From: Carpediemonas membranifera BICM
Lineage: Eukaryota > Protista > Fornicata
Direction: 5' to 3'
Length of the DNA stretch: 64,000 nucleotides
Assembly (NCBI GenBank): GCA_019828565.1
Contig: JAHDYR010000053.1
Span: forward strand, 532,214 to 596,213
Shown: positions 21,847 to 63,962 of the stretch, one piece after another
Layout of the letters: the number at the start of each line of letters is the position of its first letter
How positions within the stretch are numbered: the first letter of the stretch is position 1
Program-made: the position numbers and the translations under genes
The notes under the pieces: generated by a model
Told to the model about the DNA's origin: nothing
Database searches by the model: none
Seen by the model: the letters and a program-made list of their open reading frames with translations, nothing else

Positions 21847-22295
21847 TTAGCGTGAGTCACTTTGCTTACTGGGTTGACGGGTGTGGCTTGGGTTCTTTTC
21901 ACGGGTGGTACAAATGGAGACGGCGCCGCTGTGTGTTGACTTCACTGCAGCTTGGCAGCGTGACCGTTCGACCGAGATCTTGATGATGTCTGGCCCCTCA
22001 AAAGATTCGCTGACCACAAGATCGTACTTGCCGGATTCCATTGCCTTGGCGATCTTGTCAAGCTTACGATTGGTCTGAGTGATGGGTCTAAAGATCTTGA
22101 GATAATCGCTGTTGTCAGGATCGAGGTCCATTGCTCTCCGAGCAAGCTTGTACGCTGACTGCACGTCGCCCAAATGTGCCATGTTGTTGTGGTCTGTTTA
22201 CATAAACTGCGGCAGGGTGAGTTAGTGGAGTCGATCAGGGTGACTTCAATGACTCGACACAAGAGCATCTTGCCCTGGATAAAACGTAAAGTCAA
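21847..22295 (-). pseudogene. TPR fragment resembling DNAJC3/P58IPK, frameshifted and truncated
   Basis: IDSTNSPCRSL / HLGDVQSAYKLARRAMDLDPDN..NRKLDKIAKAMESGKY..ERSRCQA..AVSIC follows the TPR order of DNAJC3; no J domain; frame break near 22200. Confidence 0.45.
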
Positions 22296-22481
22296 GTAAA
22301 TGCTCTACCGTAAATTTCTTTCTTTCATTGGCTTCAAACCTGCGTCAAGCAGATTGCTTGAGATGACTATACACCCGACCCGATCGGCGTCTGATGGATC
22401 CCACTGTTCCTGAAGCTAGTGTGATAACGAGAGAAGATTTATGGGTGACTTCTTCAAGGCCATTCGCTCAGGCAGCACAGG

Positions 22482-23400
22482 TCAAGCTGGGCGATTGAGG
22501 GACTCGATGCAATGTGATGGTCTTGCCACAGCCACAGAGCAGGGTCGACCCGTCCGGGGAGAAGGCGAGGCTGAACACCATGTTATCACACTTGATTGTA
22601 TGGTAGCACTCGCGGCTCTCGGTATTCCACAGCTTGATGGTCTTGTCCAGTGACCCGGATGCGAGGACCCTGCCGTCAGTCGGTGAGAAGGCGACACAAC
22701 AGAATCATGGCCAGTGAGAGGTTTGCCGACGCACTTCCAGGTCCTGGTTTCCCAGAGTTTGATAGTCTTATCGTACGACCCAGAGGCCAGCAGAGCGCCG
22801 TCCGAGGAGATGGCGAGACTGAGATCATCACGATCACCAGTGTGCCCTCCAGAGTCTTCACGAGATTGCCGCACTGAGTTTCACACACGGGTGATGGCGG
22901 CGGAGCTTTCACCTCCGTACTCCAACTGCAGACACTTGTCGGTGTCAAGGTCCCACAATTTGACTTATATAGCCCATAGACTGTCCCATCCTCGCATCCG
23001 GACAGCAGCTTGTTGTTGGCGTCTGGTGAGAAGGCGAGGCTGTGGATAGGTGCCTTCAGTCATCGTTTCAGTTCCGCTGTATTCACCATCAGAGTTAAAG
23101 TGTTCAACGTATTCAAAACAATATGAGAGGTGTTCCGCATCACCACTGTGCCCCTCGAGTCTTAGGCTAGACTTAGGCACTCGTGTGCCATCCGCCTCAT
23201 ACAACTGGATTTCCCCACACTCGTAACCTAATGCGATCAGCCCCTTATTGGATACAGCAATGATGCTAACAGGTCCGCCATCGCCGCTGTGTTCCCGCTT
23301 ACCTATACATAGGCCGCTCTTGTCCCAAAGCTTGACTTCTCTGCCGGCTGCAGTGAGAATGAGGTGGTCGGTCAGGAAGGCGTTGACATTTTGACGGCTA
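22482..23400 (-). pseudogene. Disrupted WD40-family paralogue
   Basis: AFLTDHLILTAAGREVKLWDKSGLCIGK and LASGSYDKTIKLW; ~22500-22715 is nearly identical to 55710-55930 but lacks 4 bp (TAGA), causing a frameshift. Confidence 0.8.
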
Positions 23401-23519
23401 TGACAGATCCGTTGTTATGCCACTTGCGTATCGGACCAAACTCTGTTGTCTCGTCGGACATCGCTTGGTACCTCGCTAGAGGAGACGCCTCAGTGCGGAT
23501 TTAGACTTCTTCTTCTTGT

Positions 23520-23710
23520 CATGGCGCACTCGCGGCTCTCAGTGTTCCACAGCTTGATGGTCTTGTCAAAAGACCCAGAGGCGAGGGTCCTGCCGTCAGG
23601 TGAGAAGGCGATGCTGTTGATAGAAAAGTGGTGCCCAGTGAGAGGTTCGCCAACACACTTCCAGGTCTCGGTGTCACAGTCATTGAGGGTCTTCTTCCAG
23701 AGTCTGACGG
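23520..23710 (-). pseudogene. WD40-family fragment
   Basis: TVRLWKKTLNDCDTETWKCVGEPLTGHHFSINSIAFSPDGRTLASGSFDKTIKLWNTESREC, paralogous to the C-terminus of 55694-58648. Confidence 0.8.
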
Positions 23711-23752
23711 TCTATTATTACCGAAAACAACGTCAATATGTCATTATTACCT

Positions 23753-25022
23753 TTAGTCAGCCAAGTGAGGGATTCTAAACGGCATGGAGGTCATGTTTTC
23801 AAGGCCATAGTACAGGGTCGACCCGTCTGTGGAGAAGGTGAGGCTGAGCACAGTGGTGACACGCTCCAACGTTGCGAGATACTCGCTGCTCTCAATATCC
23901 CACAGCTTGATGGTCTTGTCATGAGACCCGGATGCGAGGACCCTGCCGTCAGGTGAGAAGGCGACACAAAAGACCTCGTCACGATGATCAGTGAGAACGG
24001 CGACGCACTCCCAGGTCCTGGTGTCCCAGAGTTTGATGGTCTTGCCAGATACTGAGGCCAGCAGAGCGCCGTCCTGGGAGAAGGTGACGCTGGTGACATC
24101 ATTAGTGTGCCCCTTCAGAGTGTGCTTGAGTGTCAAACTGCCCATGTTAAGGCCCCACACATGGATCGTCGGCGTACCTTCATTTTTGTACGGAATCCCA
24201 GAGACAACAGTCTTGTTGTCGGGGGAGATGGCGACGGAGAGTACACAATGCGCGTGTCCTCCAGCCATCATACACTCGCCGGCGTCAACGTCCCACACCC
24301 TGACCTTGTTGTCACAGGAAGATCCGGACACCAGTTTCGTACCGTCTTGGGAGAAGGCGAGGCTGGTCACAATAGAAGTGGGCTTGCCCATAAGAAGTTC
24401 GTCATCTGTGTAAAGTTTGGACAGCTCCACGGTGTTCTCCTTGAGTGTCTTGTAGTGGTAGGGGTCCTGTGGGTTCTCCGCCTTCCACACCTTGATATCG
24501 CCAGTATTGACACCTGATGCGATCAACCCGGCCTGGGAGACGGCGATGCAGAAAATTGGAAGGAAGTTGTGCTGCAGCTTGCGTTTGCAGGAGACAATAC
24601 AGCTCTTAACGCGGTCCTGTCATCATATCAGAGAACGGTCCCATCTCGGGCAGGTTTGAGCGCGACAGAGTTGCTAGGACTATTCCGAATATTATTGTTC
24701 TCGATACCAATGTTGCGAATAGTCCAGCACAAAAGAAAACACGGGGGATCCACTCAAGTCCCGCGAACTCGGCCAACTTCCGCAAGTAACACGCAAGTTT
24801 TCTGAGAAACTGGACCAGATATGGGATAAGAACACGCATGCGAGCTATATTCTTCTTGAGCTTTCCCCAGATCCACTTTGCGAAATGCATTCGATCAGCT
24901 GTCTGATTGGACACCATCCTGCTTCTTGCTGAGCCTATATTGTTTGTAAGCGATATGGACGGCGAGGATGTTACTAAAGATATCGTGGTAATAACGGCTA
25001 AAATCGTGGTGATAACATCAAT
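23753..25022 (-). pseudogene. WD40-family gene with intact propeller ORF (23753-24526) but disrupted leader
   Basis: About 6 WD repeats; upstream frameshifted leader IDVITTILAV / LAVHIAYKQYRLSKKQ (~24918-25022) is homologous to the leader of 48521-49660; stops in between. Confidence 0.7.
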
Positions 25023-38380: not shown

Positions 38381-38640
38381 GAAATTTTGTGGCTAAACTG
38401 CACATTGCAATGAACGGCGAGAAACACTCGATGCGGCGCATAGAAGCCACGTTCATGAGGCTCCACTGATTCTATTCATGCTACTTAAAACATCAACGGC
38501 TCTGCCGGTCGTTCAGACCCGGGGCAACAAGACCAAGTCCACTCGACTATGGCAACCCCATCCAGATCAAGAGCCTCCACCCCTCTCCCAATGAGTAAAT
38601 ACCCCACATGAACTGGCCATGCAACCGAATGTTTACTTCC

Positions 38641-40562
38641 CTAGAGTTTCTCGACGGGCTCGATGCCGAGGATGTCGAAGCACTTCTTCATCGTGAGCTG
38701 GGCGGCCAGCAGCATGTGCAGGCGGGACTCGCGCATGACGGCATCATCCGTGATCACACGGCACTTCTCGTAAAAGTCAGAGATCTTGACCGAGAGGTTG
38801 TAGAGGTAGTCGCACAACCGGTGGGGGTAGAGGTCCTTGAGGGTGCTGACCACCTCGTCCTGGAAGCGGGCGATGTGTATCATCAACGCGACCTCGGCCG
38901 CACGCTCCTCAGCGACCTCCGAGAGAACGATTGCCTCGGGTGTCTCGAGGAGAGCCTCCTTGGTCGTGCCGGCCTTGCCGAAGATGGAGGAGATGCGGGC
39001 GTACGCGTACATAAGGTAGACGGCGGTGTTGCCCTTGAGGTTGAGCATCCGGTCGAACGAGAAGACGTAATCCTTCGTCCGCTGCGAAGAGAGGTCGGCG
39101 TACTTCACAGCAGCGATGCCGACCTTCTGGGCGATCTCGGGCATCTCCTCCTCTGTCATACGGTTGGCCGACCGCTCCTTGAGGATAGCGTGGACCTTGC
39201 CCACCGCCTCATCCAACAGAAGCCGCAGCCCGACCGTGTCGCCCGACCGCGTCTTGAACTTCTGCCCACTGGTGTCCTTGACGAGGCCGAAGCCCACGTG
39301 GACGGCTTCGGGGTCGGGTCCCATCTCGACCCACCCCATGGCCTTTGCTGCGGCGAAGATGAGGTCAAAGTGGGGGGCTTGGCCGTGATCGGTGCAGTAC
39401 ACGATCTTGTCAGCGTGCAGGCGCTGGGTACGGTAGTAGATCGCGGCCATGTCGGTCGAATCGTATCCGTATCCACCGTCTGTCTTACGGAGGATCAAGG
39501 GGATCGAGGCGGACTGGCCCTTCTTGCTCTTGGGGGCGTCGGGGTCGGGCTTGCCGTCACGGAACCAGCAGAGGGCGCCGTTGTCGAGCTCGGCCTTGCC
39601 CTCGTCTTCCATCATCTTGATTACGACCGGGATGAGGGGGTTGTAGAAGGACTCGCCGCACTCGGCGATAGAGACCTTGAGCATGTCGTAGATGACCTGG
39701 AAATCGGCCCGGGAGAGCTCGCAGATCTTCTTCCAGGCGGCGTACTCGTCAGGGGAGTGGGATTGGAGCTTCACGACAGTGCGGCGGGCCTCCTCCTTGA
39801 ACTCGAGGTCCTCGTCGAAGTGGGCCTTCGCGCGCTTGTAGAAGGTGACCAGATCGCCGATATCGGGCATCTTCTCCTTGAAATCGGGCGCCTCGAGCTT
39901 GAGCTGGGCTATGAGCATGCCGAACTGCGTGCCCCAGTCGCCGACGTGGTTGGTACGGATCACAGCGGGCTTGGCGTTCTCGCCCTCGTCCTCGATAGCC
40001 TTCTCGACGGCGGCCCAATCACAGACGGGGTCGACATCGACGCCGCCTTCGGGGATGCCGAGGCAATACTCGTAGAGGCGGCAGATGGTGTCGCCGATAA
40101 TGGTGGAGCGAAGGTGTCCGACGTGGAGGGGCTGGGTAAGCGGTGGATGGTCATACAAACCTTGGCGATGTTGGGCGATGAAAAGTCGACGACGACGCGC
40201 TTGTAGGGAACCTCAGGGGGGATGGGGGAGCCAGTGGCCAGAAGACGCTTGATCTCGGCCTTGATGAAGTCCTCCTTGAGGTAGATGTTGATGAAACCGT
40301 TGACAGGCTCGCACTTCGCGATCACGTCGTTCTCGGGGACGTTGGCTGCGATCTCAGAGGCAACGTCGAAGGGAGACTTCTGCTCTGTCTTCGGCTTGCC
40401 CTTGTTGTGAAGCTTGGACAGCTGCATGGCGTTGTTGCACTGATAGTCACCGAATCCGGCACGCACGCTGACCATGATGATGGCGTTCACATTCTTCCCC
40501 GCGTACTTGGGAGCAACAATGTCTAGAGACTCCTGGAAGAGCTTTTGAAGCGTTACAAGCAT
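38641..40562 (-). CDS. RARS: Arginyl-tRNA synthetase (2 exons; intron 40132-40160)
   Basis: GDYQCNNAM; VVVDFSSPNIAK|PLHVGHLRSTIIG joined by a 29-bp GTTTGT..CTTACCCAG intron; NHVGDWGTQFG, KFKTRSG, GNTAVYLMYAYAR. Confidence 0.97.
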
Positions 40563-41343
40563 TGGGTAAGCTGATCTGAGTGCTTCGACTGGCGATGACT
40601 TTGGTGCAGTTTATGACATTTTCATCGGAGGAGGAACGCCTCAGATCAGACAAGTCAGTCGCATTAAGCGCTAAGTCGTGCTCATCAGTGGCCCAGAGTT
40701 TGAAGGGACAGTTTGTCGCAATACAAGTGTCGTATCGGAGTGGATTCTCGACCGGTTCGCTTTTCAGGTATACTTTGTCAAATGATGGTGCCCATTGAAC
40801 GAGCGCCCATTCTCCCTCTCCCGACGACTCAAGATGGCCTTAAAGAGCGAGAGTCGTGGAGTCTGCGTGACTCCAAGTGAGTCACAACTACTTATCGGTA
40901 AACTGAGTCCTCACAGTACGGTGCTCAATCGAACTCAAGGGGCACTGAATATATTGTCAGCAACACTTCTCGCCTCAGTTTCGCAGTCCATATCGATAGT
41001 GTCAATCATCAGACTCTAGAACACCGAGACCTGGGTTTCAGCCCCAATCTTCCGGAAGTTGCCCCTTGCCGGACCAGATCACACAAGGGAGGCGGACGCC
41101 CACCGCACCGCTCCCTGGACACCGACCACGTCTGCCCATGTAGTTGAGTGTGGGTTGGTGGGTACCTTTTGGCATAGGTGGTTAGTTAGAGTGTCAGTCC
41201 GTAGAGCTAAACCCACAATCCCAGAGACGGCCCGATATCACTGGATGTATCTGCCGGAGAATTATTCATCGGTCAGATCTTCGAGTCGCTTTTTTCGACT
41301 CGGCCAGAAAACTGGCGATAATCATCATTAGCTCAGCTTTTCT

Positions 41344-42027
41344 ATGGGTATTGCAGCGCTGTTGTCCAGTTGGACGCATTATAGTATAGAAGACTTGTCG
41401 ACTGATGCCAGGGAAGTCATCGTCGGCGTTCTAGTTGCCATCATCTCGAGCTTAATCCTCTATTGCATTGGCTGTGGCTGTGCTACGGCCGTTTACAAAT
41501 GTGGTTCTCAGATAATAAGTATCGTTAGGGGGCTCAAAAAGAATCCACATCCAAATCCTCGTCTTATTCCCAAGCCGTCGGCCAGGACGGACAGCATCGC
41601 GATCGCGCCACAGTCAACGGACGACACCGACCTTCTCGTCGACATCTGGTTCAGGGCATCGCTCCAGGCCCATGGCTTCCTGGGGGCGGCCCGGCTGGAA
41701 AGCCAGCGTGAGGCGGTGCGCGACGTCTATTTCCCGCAGGCCGAAACCTGGGTCGCCACCGACGGGTCGAAACCGGTCGGCTTCATCAGCCTGCTGGGCG
41801 CCCACATCGGCGCCCTGTTCGTCGACCCGCCGATGCAGGGCCGGGGCATCGGCCGGCGGCTGATCGCGCAGGCCGGGGCCGTTCGCGGCGCCTTGTCGGT
41901 CGAGGTCTACGCCGAAAACCGGGCGGCTACGGCCTTCTACCGCCGCCAGGGATTCGTCGAGACCGGGCGCCGGCCGGTCGACGACAACGGCCTGCCGCAT
42001 CCCCTGATTCGCATGGAACGCGCCTGA
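41344..42027 (+). CDS. Chimeric gene: eukaryotic TM leader fused to a bacterial YjaB-like GNAT acetyltransferase
   Basis: TM VIVGVLVAIISSLILYCIG; then DIWFRASLQAHGFL..VGFISLLGAHIGALFVDPPMQGRGIGRRLI..VEVYAENRAATAFYRRQGF..GRRPVDDNGLPHPLIRM; abrupt GC increase from ~41572. Confidence 0.85.
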   Translation: MGIAALLSSWTHYSIEDLSTDAREVIVGVLVAIISSLILYCIGCGCATAVYKCGSQIISIVRGLKKNPHPNPRLIPKPSARTDSIAIAPQSTDDTDLLVDIWFRASLQAHGFLGAARLESQREAVRDVYFPQAETWVATDGSKPVGFISLLGAHIGALFVDPPMQGRGIGRRLIAQAGAVRGALSVEVYAENRAATAFYRRQGFVETGRRPVDDNGLPHPLIRMERA

Positions 42028-42089
42028 CCGACCCGGCGACCGGATCAGGCCACCTTATCAATGCGTTACCCCCCTGCCCAACGAGCCAG

Positions 42090-42227
42090 ATCCCGACGCC
42101 ATTGTGGCAACATTAGGTTCACGTTCATCGGATTGCTCCGGTCATGTCAAGGCCGTCGCCTTCCTGACCGACTACATCATGCTCACTATCACGAATTATG
42201 TCAGGCTGTGGGACAAGAGCGGCCTGT
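42090..42227 (+). pseudogene. Truncated WD40-family remnant
   Basis: SSDCSGHVKAVAFLTDYIMLTITNYVRLWDKSGL; DNA nearly identical to ~48805-48907. Confidence 0.85.
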
Positions 42228-42296
42228 CTCGCCGGAAGGTAATCCGATCAGCTCTTCAGGCCCTTATCCCCACAGTTTCGCAGTCCAAGGATACTG

Positions 42297-42380
42297 TGTG
42301 GTTTGGAAGAGAAAGAGTTTACGAGTAAAAAGAGGTTTGGACCCTCCCAGGGATATTGGTAGATATTAATACTGACTACA
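42297..42380 (-). repeat. 3' LTR (84 bp)
   Basis: Identical to 48247-48330. Confidence 0.97.
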
Positions 42381-42390
42381 CTTCCCCCCC
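42381..42390 (-). other. Polypurine tract
   Basis: GGGGGGGAAG on the minus strand directly abutting the 3' LTR. Confidence 0.9.
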
Positions 42391-43083
42391 ATGGCCAAGC
42401 AGTCGCGCGGCCATCACCACAACCAACATCTGGTATTACGTGGGGCTAGAGCCACCAATCGAACTTGGGATTACGCTCGCTCATGCCGAACCACTATTGG
42501 AATTATCGACGGGATAACGACAACCAACTTCTGGGATTACGTCTTATTGCAACCTCCAGGTGAGGTATTATGCGTAGTAAGGTGTGACCGAAAGATTCGA
42601 GGATGATATCAAAAAGATTCGGAAAAGATCTATGCAGCGCTGCTAATTAAGATATGGGTTCAGGAGCTCCTGTATAAGTATAAAAAGGACGTACCACAGC
42701 CCCGCCCCCTCGCGGGCACTCTGGGGCTCGCGCTCGACTCGGGAATTCTGGCCCCGAGCATTTTTAGGCATTTCGCCATCGCTCATACAGAAAGTTCTGG
42801 TACGTTGGGCTGATCCGCCCCATTCTTACACAGTGCCCGAAAAAGGGGTTTTCGAGCCCCAATTCGGCTTCGTTGGCGAGTTCTGACTCTTTTTGTTCTG
42901 CGCTGTACCGAAAGTTAACCAACATCATAAGCACTGCTCCACGGACGGTAGAAGTCTCGTGGACTGTGTTTGAGATATAAATATTGTGAATAGTCCGTCA
43001 TGGGGATCACTATGGGCACTTCCATTCGTCATTTGGGAAAAGTGCAGGATATGTCGCTTTTTCCTGAGGAAAAGCGGCCAAAC

Positions 43084-44171
43084 ATGGCGGATACGCGTGC
43101 GCTCGACCAAATTCGTGAGCTTTCGATGGAGTTAACTGATGACGATTATCGCAAGGTGCTCGAAAATGCCCTTGCGACGATTGCTCGGACGCAACGCTAT
43201 AAGGCCCGCACGATGAGCGCCCTGCAGAAGAGGGCCATCCGCAAGAGCGGCGGGAATGCCTCCCAGATGCCCATGATGCGGTTTGTGCGCCTCTATTCTT
43301 CTTACCTAGGATCTTCACCGTGCCGGCAACTTCCGCTCGGGAGCTCTGCCGTGTGCCGGTGGGGGGTGTGATGGAGGGGTGCTTCACGAAGCAGGCAGAC
43401 CAGCTCGCCGATGTGGTTCGACGGTGCTTGGCTGGCTACGTTAACTTCGTTGAGGTGCCCCTCGAGGGGATCTTCGATCACCTCTCCACCGGCACGCTGT
43501 GGAGCAAGGACGCAGGCGGCTTGCTCGATCTGTCAGCCGGCCTGCTGGTCCAGCTCCAGCGAGAGCATCGTGCGCTCCGCTTCCTGCGGGAGGCGTCTCG
43601 CAGCCGTGCCGAAACCGACTCCGGCATAGTCCGCGACGCCGTTGACGCCGGCGTTTTCGATCTCAAGGGCAACGGCTCAAACAGGTACGTCACCCCGGAG
43701 ACCCTGTTCTCGCTCTCCCGCGCTCTCGGCTGCGGCCAGAGCCTGGCCCGCCGCACCCTGTACCGGGTCGCCGTCTTGGCCCTCGCCCCAGACTACTACC
43801 GCTTGTTCCTCCACGGGGAGCGTAGCGAGAACGTCTCAGTCACCGCCACTCACTGGGCCGCCCTGGTCGCTAACCTCCGCGCCATGGACGAGCTTCCGTC
43901 CCTGCCGGAGCGGCTCGGTCTGGCCATGCAGGTCTCTGACCCTGAGCGCGAGTACGAGGTCCTTGACGTGCTGGGTCACGAGATCCTGACGGCTGGATCC
44001 GACCGCCGACTCATTCTTCACGTTCAGTACGCGGGCTACACTGCCCCTACCTGCACTGGTCTGGACGAGACCCTCGCTGCCGTCAGCGTGGCTCGCGAGT
44101 ATCTGATCGACTTTGAGCTCGAGGACTGGATCAAGGGCCCTGACGACGAGTCCGATGACGACTACCAATAA
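43084..44171 (+). CDS. Element-encoded antisense accessory protein (~352 aa) with C-terminal chromodomain-like region; predicted intron 43281-43309
   Basis: Removing GTTTGTGCGCCTCTATTCTTCTTACCTAG joins ORFs 43000-43371 and 43320-44171 in frame (..MPMMR|IFTVPATS..). C-terminus EREYEVLDVLGHE..LHVQYAGYTAPT..ETL..AREYL; AATAAA overlaps the stop codon; start could also be ATG 43000 or 43051. Confidence 0.75.
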
Positions 44172-44190
44172 ATCTTGATTGAGAATCCGT

Positions 44191-47100
44191 TTACTGCCTG
44201 GAGTGCGCAGCACGGTGTAGTTCTCTCTGCTCAAGAAAGTCCTCAAACTTGTCACAGCCATCGACATTCTCGAATGGCTCCCACGAAGCTTCGTCCGGCT
44301 CATAGCCCAGCCACTCAACCAAGTATTCGCGATTCTCGACCGGACCGGAGTCGGGCCGGGACTTCACAATCTTGCTCGGTATATACTCGGCCGCAACAGT
44401 GTTAGCCAAGCGAGTAACTTGCTCCACGGACATGTCGCCGTGATCGAACGGGAGGACCCGGGAAGCGTCGACCCTGAACTGCTTCAGAGATTCAAGGTCA
44501 CGCACAGTATAGGCAACAACCTTGTTGTACTCCTGGTGCACCGACACTAGTGCCATTGGGCCACGCAGGCCGGCGGCGAATTTGTCGGGTGGTCTGTCGG
44601 GGTAAGCCACCAGGACGTACGGAGTCGAAACCGTGGCACGGGCGTCCGGCCTGTACTGCTGTAGGAGCCGCTTGCTCTTAATGCGCTCGGCAGCCATGAG
44701 CCGGTACGCCTTGGCCTCGGACAGCCAGTCCTCTTGCTGGTCAACGATATACGTCTCACCCGGCGCGATAACGGTAATGTCCTTTGGCACTCGCATCTCG
44801 GTGCCATACAGGATCTCGGCTGGGGAGAGTCGAGTAGGGACTCGAGGGGTCGAGTTAACAAGGTATTGGGCAATCGGTAAGCTGTGGACCCAATCATTGG
44901 ATCTAAACTGGTAACGACGTGCTGTCAGGATGGACTTAACCGACACATTCGCTCGCTCTACTAACCCATTCGACTGGGGATGATGAGCCGTCGTCTTTCT
45001 CGTTGTAAACCCGAGTCGGGCACTCAGGTCGTTAAAGACTGCGTTGACGAACTGGGATCCTCCATCCGTCTGCAGTACCTTCGGTACGCCGTATCGGAGG
45101 ACCCAGTTATTGACAAACGCCCTGGACGTCTCGACCGCTCGGGTAGTCTGGAGCGGGACAAGCTCAGTCCAACGTGAGCACATGTCTATTACAACGAGGA
45201 TATACTTATAGGTCGTGCCGTCGACCGTGCACGAGGTAGCGGACATAGTGTCCATGGCCACTCGGTCGAAGGGGTGCTCGACCGCGGTGTGCAAACCCGC
45301 ATCGGAAGAGGCCGGGGGCTTACGCCTTAACTGGCATATTGGGCACTTGGCGATATAGTCGTCCACGTCCTTCTGGCGGACACGTACGCCCCAGTCTCGA
45401 AGAAGGTTCTTGGTCGCCCAGGCGGACAAGTGAGCCCCGGCGAAGTGATGCGCCTTCTGCAGCCTGTCCGCGACTTGGGTATCGAGGGTGTTAGCGAACA
45501 CGCGAGAAAGGCCATCTGCTGCCCCGTTGTCAACACCCGGAACGTGACGTATGGTGAAATCGAGGTCAGCTAGTTGGTCGTACCATCTACGGACCTTGGG
45601 GTTGATGGACTTGGCCATGAACAGCAGGTTGCGGTGATCAGTACGGATGGTAAAGTGCGTCCACGAGAGGAATTTCCGCCAACGCTGGACGGCCAGGATG
45701 ATTGCGTAGGCTTCCTGCTCTGTGGTACTCCACCTAGTCTGGACCGCGGAGAATGCGTGGGACATGAAAGCGATCGGCTGCCCGTCCTGTAGTAATACGG
45801 CGCCGCATCCCACGTCTGAGGCATCGGTCATGAGGACATGTGTCGCGTCCGTCTTGAAGTGAACGAGGGAGACCCGCTTAAGGAGCTCGGCGATAACGTC
45901 GCCCAGGGCCGCTTGCTGACCCGGCCCACCGGGTTCGGCCTTGCCAGCCGACACCTGCAACAGAGGATGAGCTCGGGACGCGAAGTTGGGCACGAAGTCA
46001 CGGAAATAATTGAGGAAACCGACGAGTGCCTGTGCGGACCGCTTGCTGGTCGGTAGTTTCAGCTTCTTAATGTCGTCGATGCGGTCTTCGGCAATCCTCA
46101 CGGTGTCTCCGGACACGAGTCGACCCAGGAACTCGACCTCAGCCGCGGCGAAGACGCACTTATCGCGACCTAGGTGTAGGTCATACTCTTGGCAACGTTT
46201 CAGGACGTCCCATAGGTTCCTTATGTAGGAAGGCTCGTCCCGACCCATGACAATAATGTCATCGATGTAAATAAGGCACTTCCCTGCCGAGATCAGGTCG
46301 GAGAAAGCCTGCTCCATGGCCCACTGGAAATGAGAACCAGCGTTACGCAGACCAAAGGGCATAGTCGTGTACTCAAACCGTCCAAGGGGAGTCCCGAAGG
46401 CGGTCAGAGGACGAGAACGGTCCGTCAGTGCCACCTGATGGTAGCCGGCCTTGCAGTCGAGCGTAGCAAAGATGGTATTACCCCTGAGCTTAGCTAGACA
46501 ATCCTCTATGATCGGGATAGGGTAGTTGAACGGGGAGTCTTCGCGTTGACCAAACGGAAGTCGATAACGAACCGGGTACGGTCCTTCCCCTTTGGGACCA
46601 AGAATGCCGGTGAGGAGTAAGCCGATGCTGATGGCTGGATGAAGCCATGTCGGGACAGGTCGTCAAGGTGTTCCTGGAGAAGTGTCTTCTTCTCCGGCGG
46701 CATGAAGAACTCGCGGCTAAAGACGGGTTCATCATCAGACAAGACTAGATCGTAAGGGATGAGCTTACTCGGACGCCCTACTCTGTCCTCGAACAGGCCG
46801 ACAAACCGCGCGAGCAGTCTGTCCTGAAGGGAAGACGACTTGTCAGACAAGGTGAATAGGCTCAACTTCTGGGGAGTAATGACCGTTGAGACGTCTTCAG
46901 CCTGCTCGGCGTCATTGGCGTCAGACTCCTCGCAGTCGTCAATCTGAGGAAGGATCCCCAGGGTGACCATATCAGGGTACCCAATGATTAGATCGTACTC
47001 TGAGGGTAGGAGGTACGCACGAGTAGTAAAGGTGCACCCACGGGGGACCAGAGCTGATTTGGCAAAGGTTACTTCGGTGGAAATAGTCTGGTCGACTGTG

Positions 47101-48230
47101 ATGACTCCAGCCGGTGTCGTCACCTCGACCGGGTCACAATGCAGGATCTTTTCGCCGGACCTCTCGGCCACTTGCGGCGATATGAAGGTTGCTGACGCGC
47201 CACAGTCGAACAACATCGACTCTGCGCTGGTCCTGTATATGGATCCTGACACAATCGGAAGAGCCTGCGCTCTGCGTTTGCTAGACGCCGCGAAACAAGA
47301 CAAATAAGAATAGTTCTGGACCTTTATACGGTCACAGAACTCTCTCTTGTGGCCCTCGCGCCCGCACTTCTCACACTTGGACTTGGGCTTCCGGCACTCG
47401 GGGCTGAAATGGCCCTTGCCCCCGCAGTTGTAACAGGTTGGGGTCGTGCTGGTAGGGCGAGCCCGATCGCGGGACCGCTTGTCCGGGCGGTGATGGTCAT
47501 GCGGGCGGTCACGACGGTCGTAGGGGCGGTCTCGGCGGTCATCTCGGCGGTCACGACGGTCGCGCTGGTTACGGCTCTGGCCGCGTTGCGGATGGGCGCC
47601 TGGCACGGGCGCTGTCGGACGGCGCGACTGATCGGAGCGGATCGCCTCGGTGAACGGAGCAAGGTACTCAGCCGACTCGGCTACGTCGCGTGCCGTCTTC
47701 ATGGTGTATTGCTGGGTCTCCGCCAGTGAGCAACCCTCAGTCTGCTCCTTCAGTCTGTAGTAGAGGGATTGGCCCTTCACAGCAAAGGCCCGCAAGTAGG
47801 CTTCACGAATGGTGTCATCCTCGTCCATGTTAAGGCACTCCAACAAGGTGTTGAACTGCGAGTTGAGCTTCGACACCTCGAGCGGCGTGAACGCCGCGAT
47901 GCGCAGCCTGATAAGGTTCAGGCATTGTTCCTTTCTGGTGGGGCGCAAGGCAGCGGCGAGTCGCTGCATGATGATCTTCTCTCTGAGCTTGCGTGATGAA
48001 GTGGAAGGTTCGTCGTCATGTTGGTCACCCTGAGGAAGCGGAACCTCCTCTAGGGTCTCTAAGCCTAGCACTTGTGATGCATAGGACTGGATCTCCGGGC
48101 TTATAAGCTTGCGGAGCTTCGCCTTACCTCCTCTAGCCTTAAAGTCACGCAGTGACGTCGTAAAAGCTACGAAAGCGCTGAATGTTGCCTCTTTCAGGAG
48201 CGGCGCTTGTTTTTTCTGTTCTCTACCCAT
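44191..48230 (-). CDS. Gag-Pol polyprotein (one 1-bp frameshift at ~46532-46535 inside RT)
   Basis: Two CCHC knuckles (CYNCGGKGHFSPEC, CEKCGREGHKREFC); protease LFDCGA; RT SSPAFLVPK..FVIDFR / YPIPII..GYHQ, MPFGL, YIDD; RNase H TDASDVG, RTDH, ADGLSR; integrase HHCC + DDE; chromodomain EYLVEWLGYEPDEASWEP. Confidence 0.95.
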
Positions 48231-48246
48231 AGGTAAGTACTAGTAC

Positions 48247-48330
48247 TGTGGTTTGGAAGAGAAAGAGTTTACGAGTAAAAAGAGGTTTGGACCCTCCCAG
48301 GGATATTGGTAGATATTAATACTGACTACA
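48247..48330 (-). repeat. 5' LTR (84 bp)
   Basis: Minus strand TGTAGTCAGT...CCAAACCACA, identical to 42297-42380. Confidence 0.97.
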
Positions 48331-48520
48331 ACTGTGTCACATGACCGTACCCTGTCTCCCTGGCACCATGGCGCTACATCACCTCACCTGTCAACTTGGC
48401 TGACGCCACCCACAAGAGACGATTGATTGTTGCGCGGCTCCGCCGACTGTCTTCAGTGAGGAGACCGAGGTTTCTAAAGTAAATAGTGCAGTTTATGCTC
48501 GCAACAAGGTGAAGGACGGG

Positions 48521-49660
48521 ATGGTTGAAACTATAGACATTATTGTCGTTATCGCTACAGTTATTGGCGTGATTGTCGGCATTATTGTTGGGATTGTTAC
48601 CACGATCGGCGTCTATATCGCTTACAAGCAATATAAGCTCAGCAAGAAGCAAGCTCGTGTTCAAGTACACACAGAGGATCCAGAATCGGGTGGGGCGTTG
48701 GATCAAACCAGCTACCAACTGATTTCCGACGACAACGAGACAGACGATGCGAGCGCCAGCTCGATTGTTTCCCCCGACGCCGGTGGAATAGTGGCGACGG
48801 TACATTCATCTGATTGCAGCGGCCATGTCAAGGCCGTCGCCTTCCTGACCAACGACATCATGCTCACTATCACGAATTACGTCAGGCTGTGGGACAAGAG
48901 CGGCCTGTGTATTGGTAAGATGGAACACAGCAACGAGTTTTCCATTGACAATATCGCCGTCTTCAAGGGCACGCCCAATGATAAGTTGATTGCAGCAGGG
49001 AGAGGTTCTGGAGAGATCCTGTTGTGGAAGGCGGATGGCACACTGCTCAGGACCTTCAACGGAAGTAACCAAAATGTGACCGGGCCCGCATTCTCCCAAG
49101 ACGGTACAAAACTGGTGCATGGATCCAGTGACTGGGCAGTCAGGATGTGGAACGTCGCCACCGGCGAGTGCACGACGATGGCAGGGCACAGCGATACAGT
49201 CATCTCCGTCGCTATCTCCCCCGACGGCAAGACCATCGTCTCTGGGTCATGCGATAATACGATCAAGGTGTGGGACGCTGGGTCGGGCAGACTCGAGCAG
49301 ACTCTGGAGGGGCACGATCGTTGGGTTTCCAGTGTTGCCTTTTCCCCAGACGGCGCTTTGCTGGCCTCTGGGTCGTACGACAACACCATCAAACTCTGGG
49401 ACACCAGGACCTGGGAGTGCGTCGCCGTTCTCACTGATCATCGTGACGAGGTCTTTTGTGTCGCCTTCTCACCGACTGACGGCAGGGTCCTCGCCTCCGG
49501 ATCAAAAGACACGACTGCCAAACTGTGGAATATTGAGCGCCGCGTGTGCTACCATACAATCGATTGTGATAACATGGTGTTCAGCCTCGCCTTCTCCCCG
49601 GACGGGTCGACCCTGCTCCATGGCTGTGAAACGACGGCCAAGCTGTATCGAGTCCCATAA
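48521..49660 (+). CDS. N-terminally TM-anchored WD40-repeat protein (HET-E-like WD repeats)
   Basis: IIVVIATVIGVIVGIIVGIVTTIGVYIAYKQYK, acidic linker, ~7 repeats of GHxxxVxSVAFSPDGxxLASGSxDxTIKLW. Confidence 0.9.
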   Translation: MVETIDIIVVIATVIGVIVGIIVGIVTTIGVYIAYKQYKLSKKQARVQVHTEDPESGGALDQTSYQLISDDNETDDASASSIVSPDAGGIVATVHSSDCSGHVKAVAFLTNDIMLTITNYVRLWDKSGLCIGKMEHSNEFSIDNIAVFKGTPNDKLIAAGRGSGEILLWKADGTLLRTFNGSNQNVTGPAFSQDGTKLVHGSSDWAVRMWNVATGECTTMAGHSDTVISVAISPDGKTIVSGSCDNTIKVWDAGSGRLEQTLEGHDRWVSSVAFSPDGALLASGSYDNTIKLWDTRTWECVAVLTDHRDEVFCVAFSPTDGRVLASGSKDTTAKLWNIERRVCYHTIDCDNMVFSLAFSPDGSTLLHGCETTAKLYRVP

Positions 49661-55693: not shown

Positions 55694-58648
55694 CTAACTG
55701 GACAATTGGGGGACTCGATGCAATATGGTGGTCTTGACACAGCCACAGAGCAGGGTCGACCCGTCCGGGGAGAAGGCGAGGCTGAACACCATGTTATCAC
55801 ACTTGATTGTATGGTAGCACTCGCGGCTCTCGGTATTCCACAGCTTGATGGTCTTGTCCAGTGACCCGGATGCGAGGACCCTGCCGTCAGTCGGTGAGAA
55901 GGCGACACAATAGACAGAATCATGGCCAGTGAGATCGCCATCGCATTCCCAGGTCTCGGCGCCCTCGTTATTGACGGTCTTCTTCCAGAGTCTGATGGTG
56001 TTGTCGCCAGACCCAGAGGCTAGCAGAGTGCTGTCCGGTGAGAAGACGACGCTGGCAACCCAACCAGTGTGTCCCTTCAGAGTCTGCACGCGACTGCATG
56101 ACTCAGCGTCCCACACATTGATTGTACAGTCCTTTGATCCAGAGACGATGAACTTGCCGTCGGGGGAGATGGCGACGGAGTTGACATTATTGGTGTGCCC
56201 TGCCAACGTCCTGAACTTGCCGCTGTCGACGTCCCACACCCTGACCTTGTTGTCCAAGGATCCAGACACCAGCATCTTGCCGTCTTGGGAGAAGGTGAGG
56301 CTCGTAACACCAGCAGTGCACGTCTCGAAGGAAGAAATTGGCATGAGCAGCGGTACTGCCACATTCCACAACGAGATATCTCCTCTATTGTCACTTGTCG
56401 CGATAATCTTATCTTGGAAGACGGCTATGCAGGAAACAGAAACATTCCTTGGTAGAAATACTTTTTCCTTACCGCCCTCGTCAAACAGCTTGACAGTCTC
56501 GGCAGCAGCAAGCATGGTGCCATCTGACAGGAAGGCGACGGCTCTGACCCAGAAGTCTGAAGAGCACTCAAAGCGCAGAATGGGTTCAACCCAATCTGGA
56601 TCGACCACAGGCAGGGATCGAAGTTGAAGGACTGCCCGAATTCGGTCAGCCAAACCCTCGGCATTGATATCTTGTGTGTTCAACTGAAACTCGGCCAAAC
56701 GTATTCGGGCGACATCCTCGAGTCTGGCTTCCGTCTCGTCGCACTGGAACACGAGCTCTTGAGACTCGCCTGAGATGGTCAAGTTGAGTGTGACAATAAA
56801 TGTGCCGTCCGCTTGGACCTCCAGACGGTCGCCGAGCATGAGGGGGTGGGTGGCGAGGTCTTTGACGGAGGGGCGGGTGTCGCGCGGGAGAAGGCAGCGC
56901 TGGATAAAGTGCCGGACGGTGTGGTCTGTGACAGTGGCTAGTGATTCGGGAAGGATGCCCTGGGAGACCTTCTTGTATACCTCAATATCATTCTCGCACT
57001 CTCTATAAGGATACTCGCCCGTGACCATCTCGAGGACGCACATCCCGAGCGAATAGACGTCGACACCTTCATCGTATGCCTTATCATAGATCTCAGGGGC
57101 CATGAATTTGCGCGTGCCCGTCAATGTCTCGGCGTGAGTTCCCTCGAGGATGCGCGAGACCCCGAAGTCGCCGATCTTGACCTTGCCGCTGCTACTGTCG
57201 ATGAAGATGTTATCGCACTTCAAGTCGCGGTGTATGATGGGCGTCGTCCGCCCGTGTATGTAGCTGAGGCCCGATAGGATCTGGCGACTGTACTTGGCGA
57301 CGTCGCTGACGCTCATGGTCCACCCGTTTTTCCTCATCTGCTTAATGTGCTGGCGCAGGGTGCCAGACATAAGCTCGGTGATGAGAATGATGCGGTCACC
57401 ATCCATCCAGCTGTCAACGTATGAGATGATGTTCTGATGGGATAGTTCAGACAGTATCTTCATCTCCCGGTGTATCCGCTCGGTCTCGCGCTCATTACTG
57501 GGGTCTTTCACCCTAACCTCACACCAGGCCAGGTCGACACAATCCTCGTGATCCCTTGCCTTGTATACTACCTTAAAGGACCCACTACCGAGCATATCAT
57601 CGGATCGGTCGAATCGAGTCGGGTTACTTGATCCGCCACGCTTCGACGAAACGGGAGGGCTTACACCATTGGCGACGATCTCAACGAGAGGCACACTCAA
57701 CCCACCCGCAGGAATGGTGCCATTGTCCGTCGTCCAAGGCAAGTCGTCGTAGAATCCGTCGACCTTGTCGAGTCCATCTGCCCACTCGAACACCAACAGC
57801 ACCTTGGTCGCGCCCACCGCGTAGTGCAGCAGGGGTGGGTGGTTGGCAGGTGTGGAGACCTGTCGGGACTTGAGCTGGTCCACCAGCTCTTTTTCCGAGA
57901 GATTAGCAGGTCGCACGACGAGCTTGACGAATACCTTGGCGGGCTCTCTCGCGTTCTTATAAAAGTACTTTCCACTGAAGAACATGGCGAATCCGGTGTA
58001 ATTGGGACGTGGGATACTGCAAAGAGGCAGCGTTGCCCGGAATACCTCCAAATCATTGCCAGCAGAACGCTCGTCCGCGATGCTGTAGAGTCGACATAAA
58101 TCGAAATCGAAGAGCTGATAGCGCTCGCCAGGATCGTCTATAGGTGCGATCACAGGAAGGGGTCTATGGTAAAGCTCCAGCCTGTGGGAGTCGGCCCTAG
58201 CGGCGTCTTTGACATGCCTTGAATCGTTAAGCGACTTAGCGAACTTGTTGATGCTCTCGTCCAGCTCGTCGATCATCGTGGCGTCGACAGTCTGCCAGTC
58301 CTTGGGCCAGTTGTTAGCCAGACCTATGAGAGCCTCAGACGATCTCCAGACCCTATCGATGTTACGATGCGACTTTCGGTATGTGCCCAATTGACTATCG
58401 GCGATGTCTTCGATCAGCTTAACGCGGGCCGGAAAGAGGACAGCAATGTGAGATCGATAAATGGCACTGAAACGCTTGTCTCGGAGTGTTTCCTCGTACT
58501 GAATCGGGTCTTTGCGGTCCTTGGGAGGCATCCAGCCGAAGTAGTCGAAAATCCGGTCTAAACCGCTGGGTAAACAGCCAGAAAGACATGTTAGCAGAAG
58601 TGGAATGCCAAGAATAGACAAGATTGCACCCACAAGCTCTACAACCAT
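55694..58648 (-). CDS. Hydrophobic leader + helical domain + WNK-type kinase + WD40 propeller
   Basis: LGSGSFKVVYKA..DLAWCEV (WNK signature), IIHRDLKCDNIFI, VKIGDFG, GT..FMAPE, EMVTGEYPY; C-terminal WD40 repeats. Confidence 0.92.
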   Translation of the reverse strand: MVVELVGAILSILGIPLLLTCLSGCLPSGLDRIFDYFGWMPPKDRKDPIQYEETLRDKRFSAIYRSHIAVLFPARVKLIEDIADSQLGTYRKSHRNIDRVWRSSEALIGLANNWPKDWQTVDATMIDELDESINKFAKSLNDSRHVKDAARADSHRLELYHRPLPVIAPIDDPGERYQLFDFDLCRLYSIADERSAGNDLEVFRATLPLCSIPRPNYTGFAMFFSGKYFYKNAREPAKVFVKLVVRPANLSEKELVDQLKSRQVSTPANHPPLLHYAVGATKVLLVFEWADGLDKVDGFYDDLPWTTDNGTIPAGGLSVPLVEIVANGVSPPVSSKRGGSSNPTRFDRSDDMLGSGSFKVVYKARDHEDCVDLAWCEVRVKDPSNERETERIHREMKILSELSHQNIISYVDSWMDGDRIILITELMSGTLRQHIKQMRKNGWTMSVSDVAKYSRQILSGLSYIHGRTTPIIHRDLKCDNIFIDSSSGKVKIGDFGVSRILEGTHAETLTGTRKFMAPEIYDKAYDEGVDVYSLGMCVLEMVTGEYPYRECENDIEVYKKVSQGILPESLATVTDHTVRHFIQRCLLPRDTRPSVKDLATHPLMLGDRLEVQADGTFIVTLNLTISGESQELVFQCDETEARLEDVARIRLAEFQLNTQDINAEGLADRIRAVLQLRSLPVVDPDWVEPILRFECSSDFWVRAVAFLSDGTMLAAAETVKLFDEGGKEKVFLPRNVSVSCIAVFQDKIIATSDNRGDISLWNVAVPLLMPISSFETCTAGVTSLTFSQDGKMLVSGSLDNKVRVWDVDSGKFRTLAGHTNNVNSVAISPDGKFIVSGSKDCTINVWDAESCSRVQTLKGHTGWVASVVFSPDSTLLASGSGDNTIRLWKKTVNNEGAETWECDGDLTGHDSVYCVAFSPTDGRVLASGSLDKTIKLWNTESRECYHTIKCDNMVFSLAFSPDGSTLLCGCVKTTILHRVPQLSS

Positions 58649-62840: not shown

Positions 62841-63962
62841 TTAGTAGTTTCTGTAGTTGTCGGCCAGGCCGGGTCTGCGCCCCGCGCCATAGCCGTAGTT
62901 GAGCCCGCCGTATGTTGGCCGGGCAGGCGCGGCGGCCGTGAACTGGCGGCCGGCCGTGGTGGCCTCGCGCGTCTTCAGGCTCTGCTCGCGGCGTGTCGCT
63001 TCGGTCTCGCGGCGGGCGACGGCGGCCTCTCTCCTCTCGAGGTCGGCCTCGCGTCTGCGAACCTCAGCCTCACGTCTGTCGAGCTCACGCTCGCGGCGGT
63101 CCGCAACGGACTCGTCGGAGGGCTCGGACGCGGCCTCCTGCGAGGGCGCCGTCTTGTTGATCGTCGCGAGGATCTTCGCCATGCGGGGGTTGCTCTCGAG
63201 TGACGCCGCGGACGGCCTGCGCACGGGCGACTTGTCGAGCATCGTGTTGATGAGCGCGATGAGCTCGTCGTCGCGGCCGCGGATCGGGAGCGGCGACTCG
63301 CGCAGGATCTTGCGGTTGAGCGTCTCCTGGGTCGTCGCGGTGAAGGGCGGGTTGAGCGTGGCCAGCTCGTAGATAACGCAGCCGAGCGACCAGATGTCGC
63401 ACTTGTCGTCGTAGGGCCGCTTCTGGATCTGCTCGGGCGACATGTACAGGGGCGTGCCGACGTTGGTGAAGGCGTAGCTGTTCGCGTTGAGCTCTCTCGC
63501 GAGGCCGAAGTCGCCGAGCTTGACGCACTGGCCCTCGCCGATCATGATGTTGCCGGGCTTGATGTCGCGGTGCAGGATCTCGGTCGGCTTGCGCGTGTGG
63601 CAGGCCGCGAGCGCGGACACCATCTGCGCGAACACGCTCCAGATCACGTCGTCGCGGATCGGGCGGGCCTCGCGCTTGTGGCGGCGGATGTAGGCGGCGA
63701 GATCGCCACCAGCGCAGTATTCCATGAAGACTGTGAGCTTCCCGGCCTCCCTGTTGACGTCGCGGTCGATGTAGCGCACGATATTCGGGTGCGAGAGGTC
63801 GCGGAGGATGTTGACCTCGTCCACGAGCAGCTTCTTCTCCTTCTCGCTCATGCGCGCGTACTTCACGATCTTCGCCGCCATAATCTCGCCGTTCCGTTCC
63901 ACCTTCATCACCTGGCCGAAAGAGCCGCGGCCGAGTTCCTCGATTGTCTTGTATTCAGCCAT
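62841..63962 (-). CDS. NIMA-related kinase (NEK2-like) with coiled-coil tail
   Basis: LGRGSFGQV, MSEKEKKLLVDEVNILRDLSHPNIVRY, MEYCAGGDL, HRDIKPGN, LGDFGLAR, VGTPLYMSPE. Confidence 0.93.
   Translation of the reverse strand: MAEYKTIEELGRGSFGQVMKVERNGEIMAAKIVKYARMSEKEKKLLVDEVNILRDLSHPNIVRYIDRDVNREAGKLTVFMEYCAGGDLAAYIRRHKREARPIRDDVIWSVFAQMVSALAACHTRKPTEILHRDIKPGNIMIGEGQCVKLGDFGLARELNANSYAFTNVGTPLYMSPEQIQKRPYDDKCDIWSLGCVIYELATLNPPFTATTQETLNRKILRESPLPIRGRDDELIALINTMLDKSPVRRPSAASLESNPRMAKILATINKTAPSQEAASEPSDESVADRRERELDRREAEVRRREADLERREAAVARRETEATRREQSLKTREATTAGRQFTAAAPARPTYGGLNYGYGAGRRPGLADNYRNY

Follow-up and report, generated by a model that had tools for sequence, protein, structure and literature searches.

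Anaerobic protists have gained much of their new metabolism by lateral transfer from bacteria. To our knowledge, nearly all known transfers are old, and their breakpoints, together with the steps by which the incoming genes reached eukaryotic expression signals, have been erased. Carpediemonas membranifera is a free-living bacterivorous metamonad with a published assembly of 24.2 Mb in 69 contigs and 57.1% GC (PMC8516963). Prokaryotic RarA and RNase H1 were laterally transferred into Carpediemonas and are expressed (PMC8516963). Here we describe a locus of C. membranifera BICM, labeled gene A, in which a GNAT acetyltransferase domain of bacterial origin is fused in frame to a host-derived transmembrane (TM) leader. 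The window is the whole stretch of DNA that was analyzed, 64,000 nucleotides of contig JAHDYR010000053.1 (positions 532,214 to 596,213 of the forward strand; G000:C39:532214-596213). Positions given below are those of the window unless a contig is named.

The closest described enzymes are the Escherichia coli acetyltransferases YjaB (PDB 2kcw) and YiaC. The domain encoded by gene A is like them in its single-domain GNAT fold, its length, and its possession of a catalytic tyrosine, a general-base glutamate, and a Q-x-x-G-x-G motif. It differs from them in being encoded by a eukaryotic nuclear gene, in being preceded by an 80-residue host TM anchor and linker, and in having no start codon of its own. 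YjaB-like GNATs are also found in the Alphaproteobacteria (Cribrihabitans, Pararhodobacter, Nitratireductor, and Rhodospirillum rubrum). These proteins are the nearest relatives of the gene A domain and share with it 50-55% identity, a common clade, GC content, and codon choice. However, they are free-standing proteins of 142-155 amino acids, and none is near enough to be the donor.

Like the RarA and RNase H1 transfers, gene A is a bacterial gene among eukaryotic genes on a large scaffold. As with the host-derived N-terminal extensions of transferred genes in other eukaryotes, host 5' sequence has been acquired. It differs from the described transfers in that its composition is still bacterial and its breakpoints can be placed to ~20-40 nucleotides. 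It differs further in that a decaying paralogue appears to donate the promoter, the start codon, and the membrane anchor. In our view gene A is a new and unusually legible case of a known phenomenon, bacterium-to-eukaryote transfer accompanied by fusion.

A Host Leader Joined in Frame to a GNAT Domain

The open reading frame (ORF) of gene A (41344-42027, + strand) comprises 227 uninterrupted codons, and the open frame begins just 4 codons 5' of the ATG. It joins a host membrane-anchor leader (residues 1-76) in frame to a complete GNAT domain (residues ~85-227). The 227-residue chimera is identical to an annotated protein model in NCBI, UniRef, and EukProt. The exact protein was sought in other assemblies and was not found there. 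The genome paper and its supplements make no mention of a chimeric GNAT gene (PMC8516963).

A three-segment change-point fit to GC content placed a GC-rich segment at 41574-42100, with GC of 0.70 inside and 0.50 in both flanks. The start of this segment was supported within 41557-41660 and its end within 42036-42112. We set the foreign block at 41572-42050 (+ strand), with host-like, AT-richer codons reaching K76 (41571) on one side and homology to the neighboring gene B (described below) restarting at 42086 on the other. So defined, the block has 479 nucleotides at ~70% GC and consists of ~24 nucleotides ahead of the domain core, the GNAT coding sequence with its stop codon, and 23 nucleotides beyond that codon. 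An earlier prediction made from the DNA alone (the original prediction) had described a complete YjaB-like acetyltransferase in one frame with a TM leader from the host and a sharply GC-rich block of ~480 bp at about these same coordinates. Both descriptions were borne out, the first by the ORF itself and by Pfam and NCBIfam matches, the second by the change-point fit and by codon composition.

The contig carrying the locus is 1.2 Mb long, and the block lies in mid-contig. In the C. membranifera genome (24,237,836 bases in 69 contigs) the GNAT block is single-copy, and the assembly holds no bacterial contig with the GNAT gene.

Fold and Predicted Active Site of the GNAT Domain

The GNAT domain, of the YjaB/YiaC type, is encoded by 41596-42027 (+ strand; residues 85-227 and the TGA stop codon). 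Pfam matched residues ~85-227 to Acetyltransf_7, Acetyltransf_10, and Acetyltransf_1 with E values from 4e-15 to 1e-11. Bit scores were 56.4 for PF13508, 52.2 for PF13673, and 45.3 for PF00583, against cut-offs of 27, 23.6, and 20.7. The NCBIfam model for YjaB (PRK10514/NF007807) was matched over model positions 4-143 of 147 with 108.3 bits, under its equivalog cut-off of 134. The model for YiaC (PRK10562/NF007853) was matched with 96.5 bits, under its equivalog cut-off of 125. Because both equivalog cut-offs were missed, we regard the domain as a member of the wider subfamily, with YjaB as the closest named family, and as an orthologue of neither YjaB nor YiaC.

Comparison with E. coli YjaB (2kcw) gave a sequence E value of 8e-26 and 38% identity. 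The protein was modeled with AlphaFold2 (AF2) from 62 sequences, and the predicted local distance difference test (pLDDT) score was ~98 for residues 81-227. The predicted order of elements is that of the canonical GNAT fold, β1-α1-α2-β2-β3-β4-α3-β5-α4-β6(-β7). A Foldseek search with the predicted model ranked 2kcw first (TM-score 0.88, root mean square deviation 1.8 Å), and at least 500 GNAT chains in the PDB matched the model at E ≤ 0.001.

At columns conserved in at least 85% of 61 bacterial homologues, 26 of 27 residues are kept in the Carpediemonas GNAT, and the number of departures equals that of the median homologue. Y199 aligns with Y117 of YjaB and is invariant in the 62 sequences. Y117 is the general acid of YjaB, and its substitution with Ala or Phe abolishes E. 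coli lysine acetylation (PMC6199490). E187 is equivalent in position to the glutamate that acts as general base in RimI and YiaC. Between β4 and α3, the motif for binding the acetyl-CoA pyrophosphate, Q165-G-R-G168-I-G170, is intact, and its residues G168 and G170 occur in 95-100% of homologues. From these features and the model, the domain is predicted to be a catalytically intact GNAT acetyltransferase. An intact ORF and active site are, however, to be expected of a young insert irrespective of function.

The opening codons of the domain, ATCGCG ATCGCG (41596-41607), are a 6-nucleotide tandem duplication. It lies exactly at the R88A departure considered in the final section. The duplication may have arisen by slippage at or after integration.

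No in-frame ATG, GTG, or TTG is present between 41572 and the domain core. The bacterial start codon was either clipped by the breakpoint or mutated. In either case, the GNAT domain can be translated only from the host ATG. The original prediction had pointed to an AGGA as a possible relic of a bacterial ribosome-binding site and start. The AGGA is indeed found at 41584-41587, 8 nucleotides before the ATC at 41596 and 5 nucleotides before an AGC codon whose counterpart in the nearest homologue is Met. It is compatible with a former ribosome-binding site; however, it is just a 4-mer at chance level, and the reading is unproven. At the 3' end, the inverted repeat that had been described across the stop codon (42022-42050, + strand) is likewise present, with GCCTGA at 42022-42027, TCAGGC at 42045-42050, and a 6 + 3 bp stem with one bulge. 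Nevertheless, its fold is no better than that of shuffled sequence (z score of -1.4, with 18 of 200 shuffles equally good), and we therefore rejected it as the relic of a terminator.

Bacterial Ancestry of the GNAT Domain

A word-indexed search of 5.8 billion proteins returned 44 relatives besides the protein itself. The best of these was 55% identical, or 58% over a shorter stretch. All of the relatives with names were bacterial (Cribrihabitans, Pararhodobacter, Rhodospirillum rubrum, Ponticoccus, and Chania). None of the word-search matches came from EukProt except the window's own protein. An exhaustive HMMER search of 1.84 billion cluster representatives gave 4,155 matches, the best again at 55% identity, and the named cluster members, for example Nitratireductor, were bacterial. 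The nearest ESM Atlas clusters were 100% Bacteria. Back-translated scans of 185,579 prokaryotic species (one genome each) and of 241 million metagenome records turned up no relative above ~55-58%. No eukaryotic homologues were found in these collections, a result limited by the missing taxon names of most metagenomic relatives and by the lack of a direct search of the sister species C. frisia.

In a maximum-likelihood tree of 83 sequences, the Carpediemonas GNAT falls within a clade of 59 rows (Shimodaira-Hasegawa-like approximate likelihood ratio test (SH-aLRT) value of 89). This clade holds every named alphaproteobacterial sequence and is without the gammaproteobacterial group. Within it, the Carpediemonas GNAT has no supported sister, and its end branch has a length of 0.91 as compared with a median of 0.6. 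The comparison with homologues that had been proposed thus returned relatives that were all bacterial and an alphaproteobacterial clade, with no closest homologue of eukaryotic origin. Judged by sequence similarity and phylogeny, the bacterial ancestry of the GNAT domain is secure. An alphaproteobacterial source is likely, with the donor lineage itself unsampled.

Composition, Codon Choice, and the Age of the Transfer

Within the one ORF, GC content at third codon positions (GC3) is 0.474 in the leader and 0.885 in the GNAT domain. This jump of 0.41 was not matched at any of the 10,780 positions compared in 73 host ORFs, drawn from the window and 13 other genome regions, where the maximum was 0.384. 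The 23 non-coding nucleotides 3' of the GNAT stop codon still have 74% GC, which is a stronger point than either of the putative relics. A GC content of 70% is reached by 9 of 3,768 windows of 444 nucleotides. Total GC (0.70) and GC at first codon positions (GC1; 0.72) of the block are above those of almost all of 70 host ORFs. The suggested comparison of GC3 with host genes therefore identified the jump within the ORF as an outlier, though high GC3 alone occurs in host genes.

Since host housekeeping genes equal the block in GC3, we rejected GC3 alone as proof of foreignness and used synonymous codon choice instead. The block favors CCG, CTG, and CGC/CGG, and GAA is as frequent in it as GAG, whereas host genes of high GC3 favor CCC, CTC, and GAG. 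Codon choice was scored as a per-codon log-likelihood difference, in which the value under an alphaproteobacterial codon table is subtracted from that under the table of host high-GC3 genes. The GNAT domain scored -0.076, on the alphaproteobacterial side and 4.8 standard deviations (sd) from the host high-GC3 genes. Host chunks of the same length scored +0.139 (sd 0.045, minimum +0.057, n = 34) and genes beside the bacterial homologues -0.125 (sd 0.065, n = 10), a range that includes the value of the GNAT domain. The size of the gap is somewhat flattered, since only two genomes supplied the bacterial table and each training set was scored against itself.

As a separate observation, a 532-codon open frame at 38608-40206 (+ strand; GC1 of 0.84) runs antisense to the arginyl-tRNA synthetase gene. 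It is the shadow of a gene of high GC3 and not itself a gene.

These data bear on whether the GNAT was acquired long ago and inherited vertically in the Carpediemonas lineage, its GC-richness being the codon bias of highly expressed host genes. A best bacterial identity of ~55%, a fairly long terminal branch, and the existence of host genes with equal GC3 are all compatible with such a history. However, the synonymous codon choice of the block is alphaproteobacterial and unlike that of the host high-GC3 genes, its GC1 and total GC stand above those of almost all host ORFs examined, and the leader of the same ORF has a GC3 of just 0.47. The GC-richness also continues past the stop codon, and no eukaryotic relatives were found in the collections searched. 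We consider an old acquisition highly improbable.

Codon choice and base composition that are still bacterial, in an ORF whose host codons are AT-richer, instead point to an evolutionarily young transfer, as do the outlying GC3 jump and the sharp GC boundaries of the block. The original prediction of a recent transfer from a high-GC bacterium stands in so far as the relatives and the codon choice are bacterial, but no donor emerged. Composition is the sole argument for the word "recent," because the best identity anywhere is ~55% and no donor has been pinned down.

The Host Leader and Its Predicted Topology

The host leader (41324-41571, + strand) consists of 20 nucleotides of 5' flank and codons 1-76, with the ATG at 41344 and a TM segment at about residues 25-50 (41416-41493). 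Residues 25-50 are strongly hydrophobic, with a maximum Kyte-Doolittle value of 2.7 over 19 residues. The N-terminal flank of this segment is short and acidic (4 Asp/Glu, 1 Lys/Arg), and the C-terminal flank is basic (7 Lys/Arg, 1 Asp/Glu). The segment is followed by a Cys-rich CIGCGC motif (CxGCGC) and then by a basic, proline-rich linker. In the AF2 model, a helix spans residues 20-44 and a disordered stretch residues 66-79. By the positive-inside rule, the leader is predicted to be a single-pass signal anchor with its N terminus outside and its C terminus inside.

The leader is homologous to the 5' end of a host gene, gene K, whose product of 1033 amino acids combines a TM anchor with a protein kinase domain and a WD40 propeller. 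Gene K lies 50 kb upstream on the same contig (G000:C39:522943-526044). The homology covers the ATG, the short ectodomain, the TM segment, the Cys cluster, and the basic stretch. Over the leader and the 20 nucleotides upstream of the ATG, identity to gene K is 70% at the nucleotide level and 44-51% at the amino acid level. Two indels, of 6 and 9 nucleotides, separate the two leaders, and both preserve the reading frame.

The Recipient Locus

The block is flanked on its 3' side by sequence from a second member of the same host family. Gene B (48521-49660, + strand) is intact and encodes a TM leader, a linker, and a WD40 propeller in 379 amino acids; its matches to WD40 and β-propeller families in Pfam have E values of 1e-49 to 1e-76. 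Gene A shares its linker and first blade with gene B. Specifically, a host linker (the PPYQCVTPLPNEPD linker) and a first WD40 blade lie at 42086-42231 (+ strand, frame 2), after the GNAT stop codon and out of frame. This segment is 84.5% identical over 142 nucleotides to gene B 48773-48908, and tblastn gave 73% amino acid identity with an E value of 3e-19. The blade core (42121-42227) is 93% identical over 107 nucleotides to the first blade of gene B (48802-48908), in agreement with the original prediction of a first-blade remnant behind the block. The ratio of nonsynonymous to synonymous substitution rates (dN/dS) between this blade and that of gene B is 0.73, from too few codons to be informative. 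Gene B is, on this similarity, the apparent source or conversion partner of the gene A blade. The WD40 remnant 3' of the GNAT stop codon is not part of the chimeric protein.

Excision of 478 nucleotides (41572-42049) would bring the blade into the frame of the leader, as expected of a simple insertion, with boundaries too loose for the agreement to serve as a test.

Homology to gene B ends after 42231. It is followed by the decayed start of a second WD40 blade (42232-42296, + strand), which continues at 48335-48366 beyond a long terminal repeat (LTR) retroelement. The retroelement (42297-48330, - strand) has gag-pol ORFs and identical 84-nucleotide LTRs at 42297-42380 and 48247-48330, and it is bounded by a 4-nucleotide target duplication, ACTG, at 42293-42296 and 48331-48334. 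When the retroelement and one copy of the duplication are removed (42297-48334), frame 2 continues, with weak alignments to blades of K, K2, and B (E values of 1e-4 to 0.7 in a tiny search space). The retroelement is fresh, splits the decayed second blade, and is unrelated to the transfer.

Upstream of gene A, a decayed WD40-like remnant at 40670-41019 (+ strand) was detected weakly through matches to blades of the family (tblastn E value of 0.11, blastn E value of 0.016). This remnant holds the first copy (40966-40990), and the decayed second blade the second copy (42263-42287), of a 25-nucleotide direct repeat whose copies are 88% identical. The 15-nucleotide core of the repeat, CAGTTTCGCAGTCCA, occurs at just these two sites in the 24-Mb genome. 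The repeat reads LLASVSQS, a degenerate version of the WD40 motif LLASGSxD. With two genome sites only and a reading as a decayed LLASGS-type motif, it was rejected as a promoter motif of the family. Gene conversion and duplication of an already decayed blade are both possibilities for a repeat shared by stretches that otherwise cannot be aligned. An origin of gene A by simple tandem duplication of gene B was also rejected, since only the linker-blade patch and the 25-nucleotide repeat are shared. The leaders and upstream regions of the two units do not align.

A further member of the family, gene K2, is a second TM-kinase-WD40 gene and lies in the window at 55697-58648 (- strand). K and K2 have in common an N-terminal TM anchor, a conserved middle region, a kinase domain, and a WD40 propeller, and look like a clustered family of receptor-like kinases. 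Gene A differs from the family in having no kinase domain and no complete propeller, and in having its WD40 remnant untranslated in the chimera. Broken WD40 ORFs of the TM-kinase-WD40 family were also seen at 21847-24526 (- strand), together with a fragment of 111 amino acids that is almost identical to part of a TPR-DnaJ gene. That gene (L005:6004-7488) adjoins gene K. This arrangement suggests that 21847-24526 arose by segmental duplication of the K locus, ~30 kb distant, and is decaying.

Because its leader resembles one paralogue and its blade another, with the second blade decayed and no further propeller present, the recipient is a mosaic remnant of a locally duplicating, decaying family. 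The proposed insertion into a WD40-family gene is thus upheld in that both flanks come from the TM-(kinase)-WD40 family, but no intact WD40 gene was cleanly split.

The flanks also bear on whether the chimera exists in the cell. DNA of a contaminating food bacterium might have been built into the contig during assembly or polishing. The culture contains bacteria, and the genome authors removed prokaryotic contigs; in addition, the exact protein is in no independent assembly. Against such an artefact, the 479 nucleotides are deep in the contig between host paralogous flanks, and two chimeric joints would be needed in a consensus of long reads polished with short reads. The assembly has neither a second copy nor a bacterial contig with the gene. 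A contaminant read would carry the bacterial start codon; none is found in the block, which is moreover in frame with the host leader, and this favors real integration. We consider an artefact quite improbable. Real integration is favored because the block is in the middle of a 1.2-Mb contig, has flanks that are both paralogous to host genes of the same contig, and is present in one copy.

Origin and Fate of the Chimera

From these observations we propose the following history, of which the integration itself is strongly supported. About 479 nucleotides of bacterial DNA from an unsampled high-GC, probably alphaproteobacterial lineage entered the nuclear genome at the linker of a truncated local member of the N-terminally anchored (kinase-)WD40 family. 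Ku70/80 and DNA-PKcs are missing from metamonads, and C. membranifera has an alternative end-joining set while non-homologous end joining is absent (PMC8516963). It is therefore plausible that prey DNA was captured when a double-strand break was mended by alternative end joining. The yjaB/yiaC-type gene lacks a usable start codon, and its frame runs on unbroken from the ATG, TM helix, and basic linker of the host. Transcription and translation would then proceed from the host-derived, K-like 5' end. A single-pass anchor would place the GNAT domain at the cytosolic side of a membrane. There, by analogy with E. coli YjaB and YiaC, it might carry out acetyl-CoA-dependent acetylation of protein lysines or small amines.

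We give an even chance to the core of this proposal, namely that a young bacterial fragment has become an in-frame, host-anchored chimera that would be translated from the host 5' end. A fuller version is more tentative. In it, a promoterless, start-less bacterial ORF was caught at a break in a redundant, decaying family member and at once inherited a promoter, an ATG, and an anchor, so that the hybrid, a new lysine or amine acetyltransferase tethered to a membrane and facing the cytosol, is expressed and selection is beginning. We regard that version as rather doubtful. "Domestication" of the hybrid gene, the term used in the original prediction, is unproven, and the membrane-tethered enzyme that it proposed is a prediction.

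Several observations weigh against the proposal. High GC3 is also found in the host arginyl-tRNA synthetase gene (0.87) and in a host kinase gene at 62844-63962 (0.91). No donor closer than ~55% identity was found in any collection searched. In the domain itself, residue 88, which is Arg in 97% of homologues, is Ala (R88A); it lies 3 residues into the first strand, beside the fusion point. The dN/dS value between the leader and gene K is 0.48, from just 66 codons, and is uninformative. An in-frame junction has a prior of ~1/3 by chance. The host parts are fragments amid decaying copies and a fresh retroelement, a setting that fits neutral insertion equally well. Finally, other laterally acquired genes of C. 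membranifera are not expressed (PMC8516963).

Several of these points are what would be expected if the insert were real and recent but had landed in a dying TM-WD40 copy, the chimeric ORF being a chance agreement of frames that is unselected and will decay. The host gene is down to one good blade, the second being decayed, and further debris of the family lies at 40670-41019 and 22482-24526. The retroelement with identical LTRs inserted freshly 270 nucleotides downstream. A young insert needs no selection to be intact, about a third of chance fusions would be in frame, R88A alters a 97%-conserved residue, and other acquired genes of this genome are silent. However, the leader retains its ATG and TM helix, its 6- and 9-nucleotide indels keep the frame, and the 5' flank is still like that of the expressed-type paralogue. 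The host ATG as the sole route of translation is as a selected fusion would predict, although chance could also produce it. We regard this neutral fate as a serious possibility, though one that falls short of even.

At this locus both junctions of the bacterial block can still be read, as can the block itself and the host pieces that give the start codon and the anchor. If the locus is silent, it would document how prey DNA enters a eukaryotic genome in raw form and, for the most part, fails there. If the chimera is expressed as proposed, it would be a compact example of the activation of a transferred gene in a manner like exon capture. It would then also exemplify neofunctionalization through the tethering of a soluble bacterial enzyme to a membrane. 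Should both capture and expression be as proposed, gene A would be a snapshot of a phagotroph without Ku-dependent end joining making a gene from the DNA of its prey.

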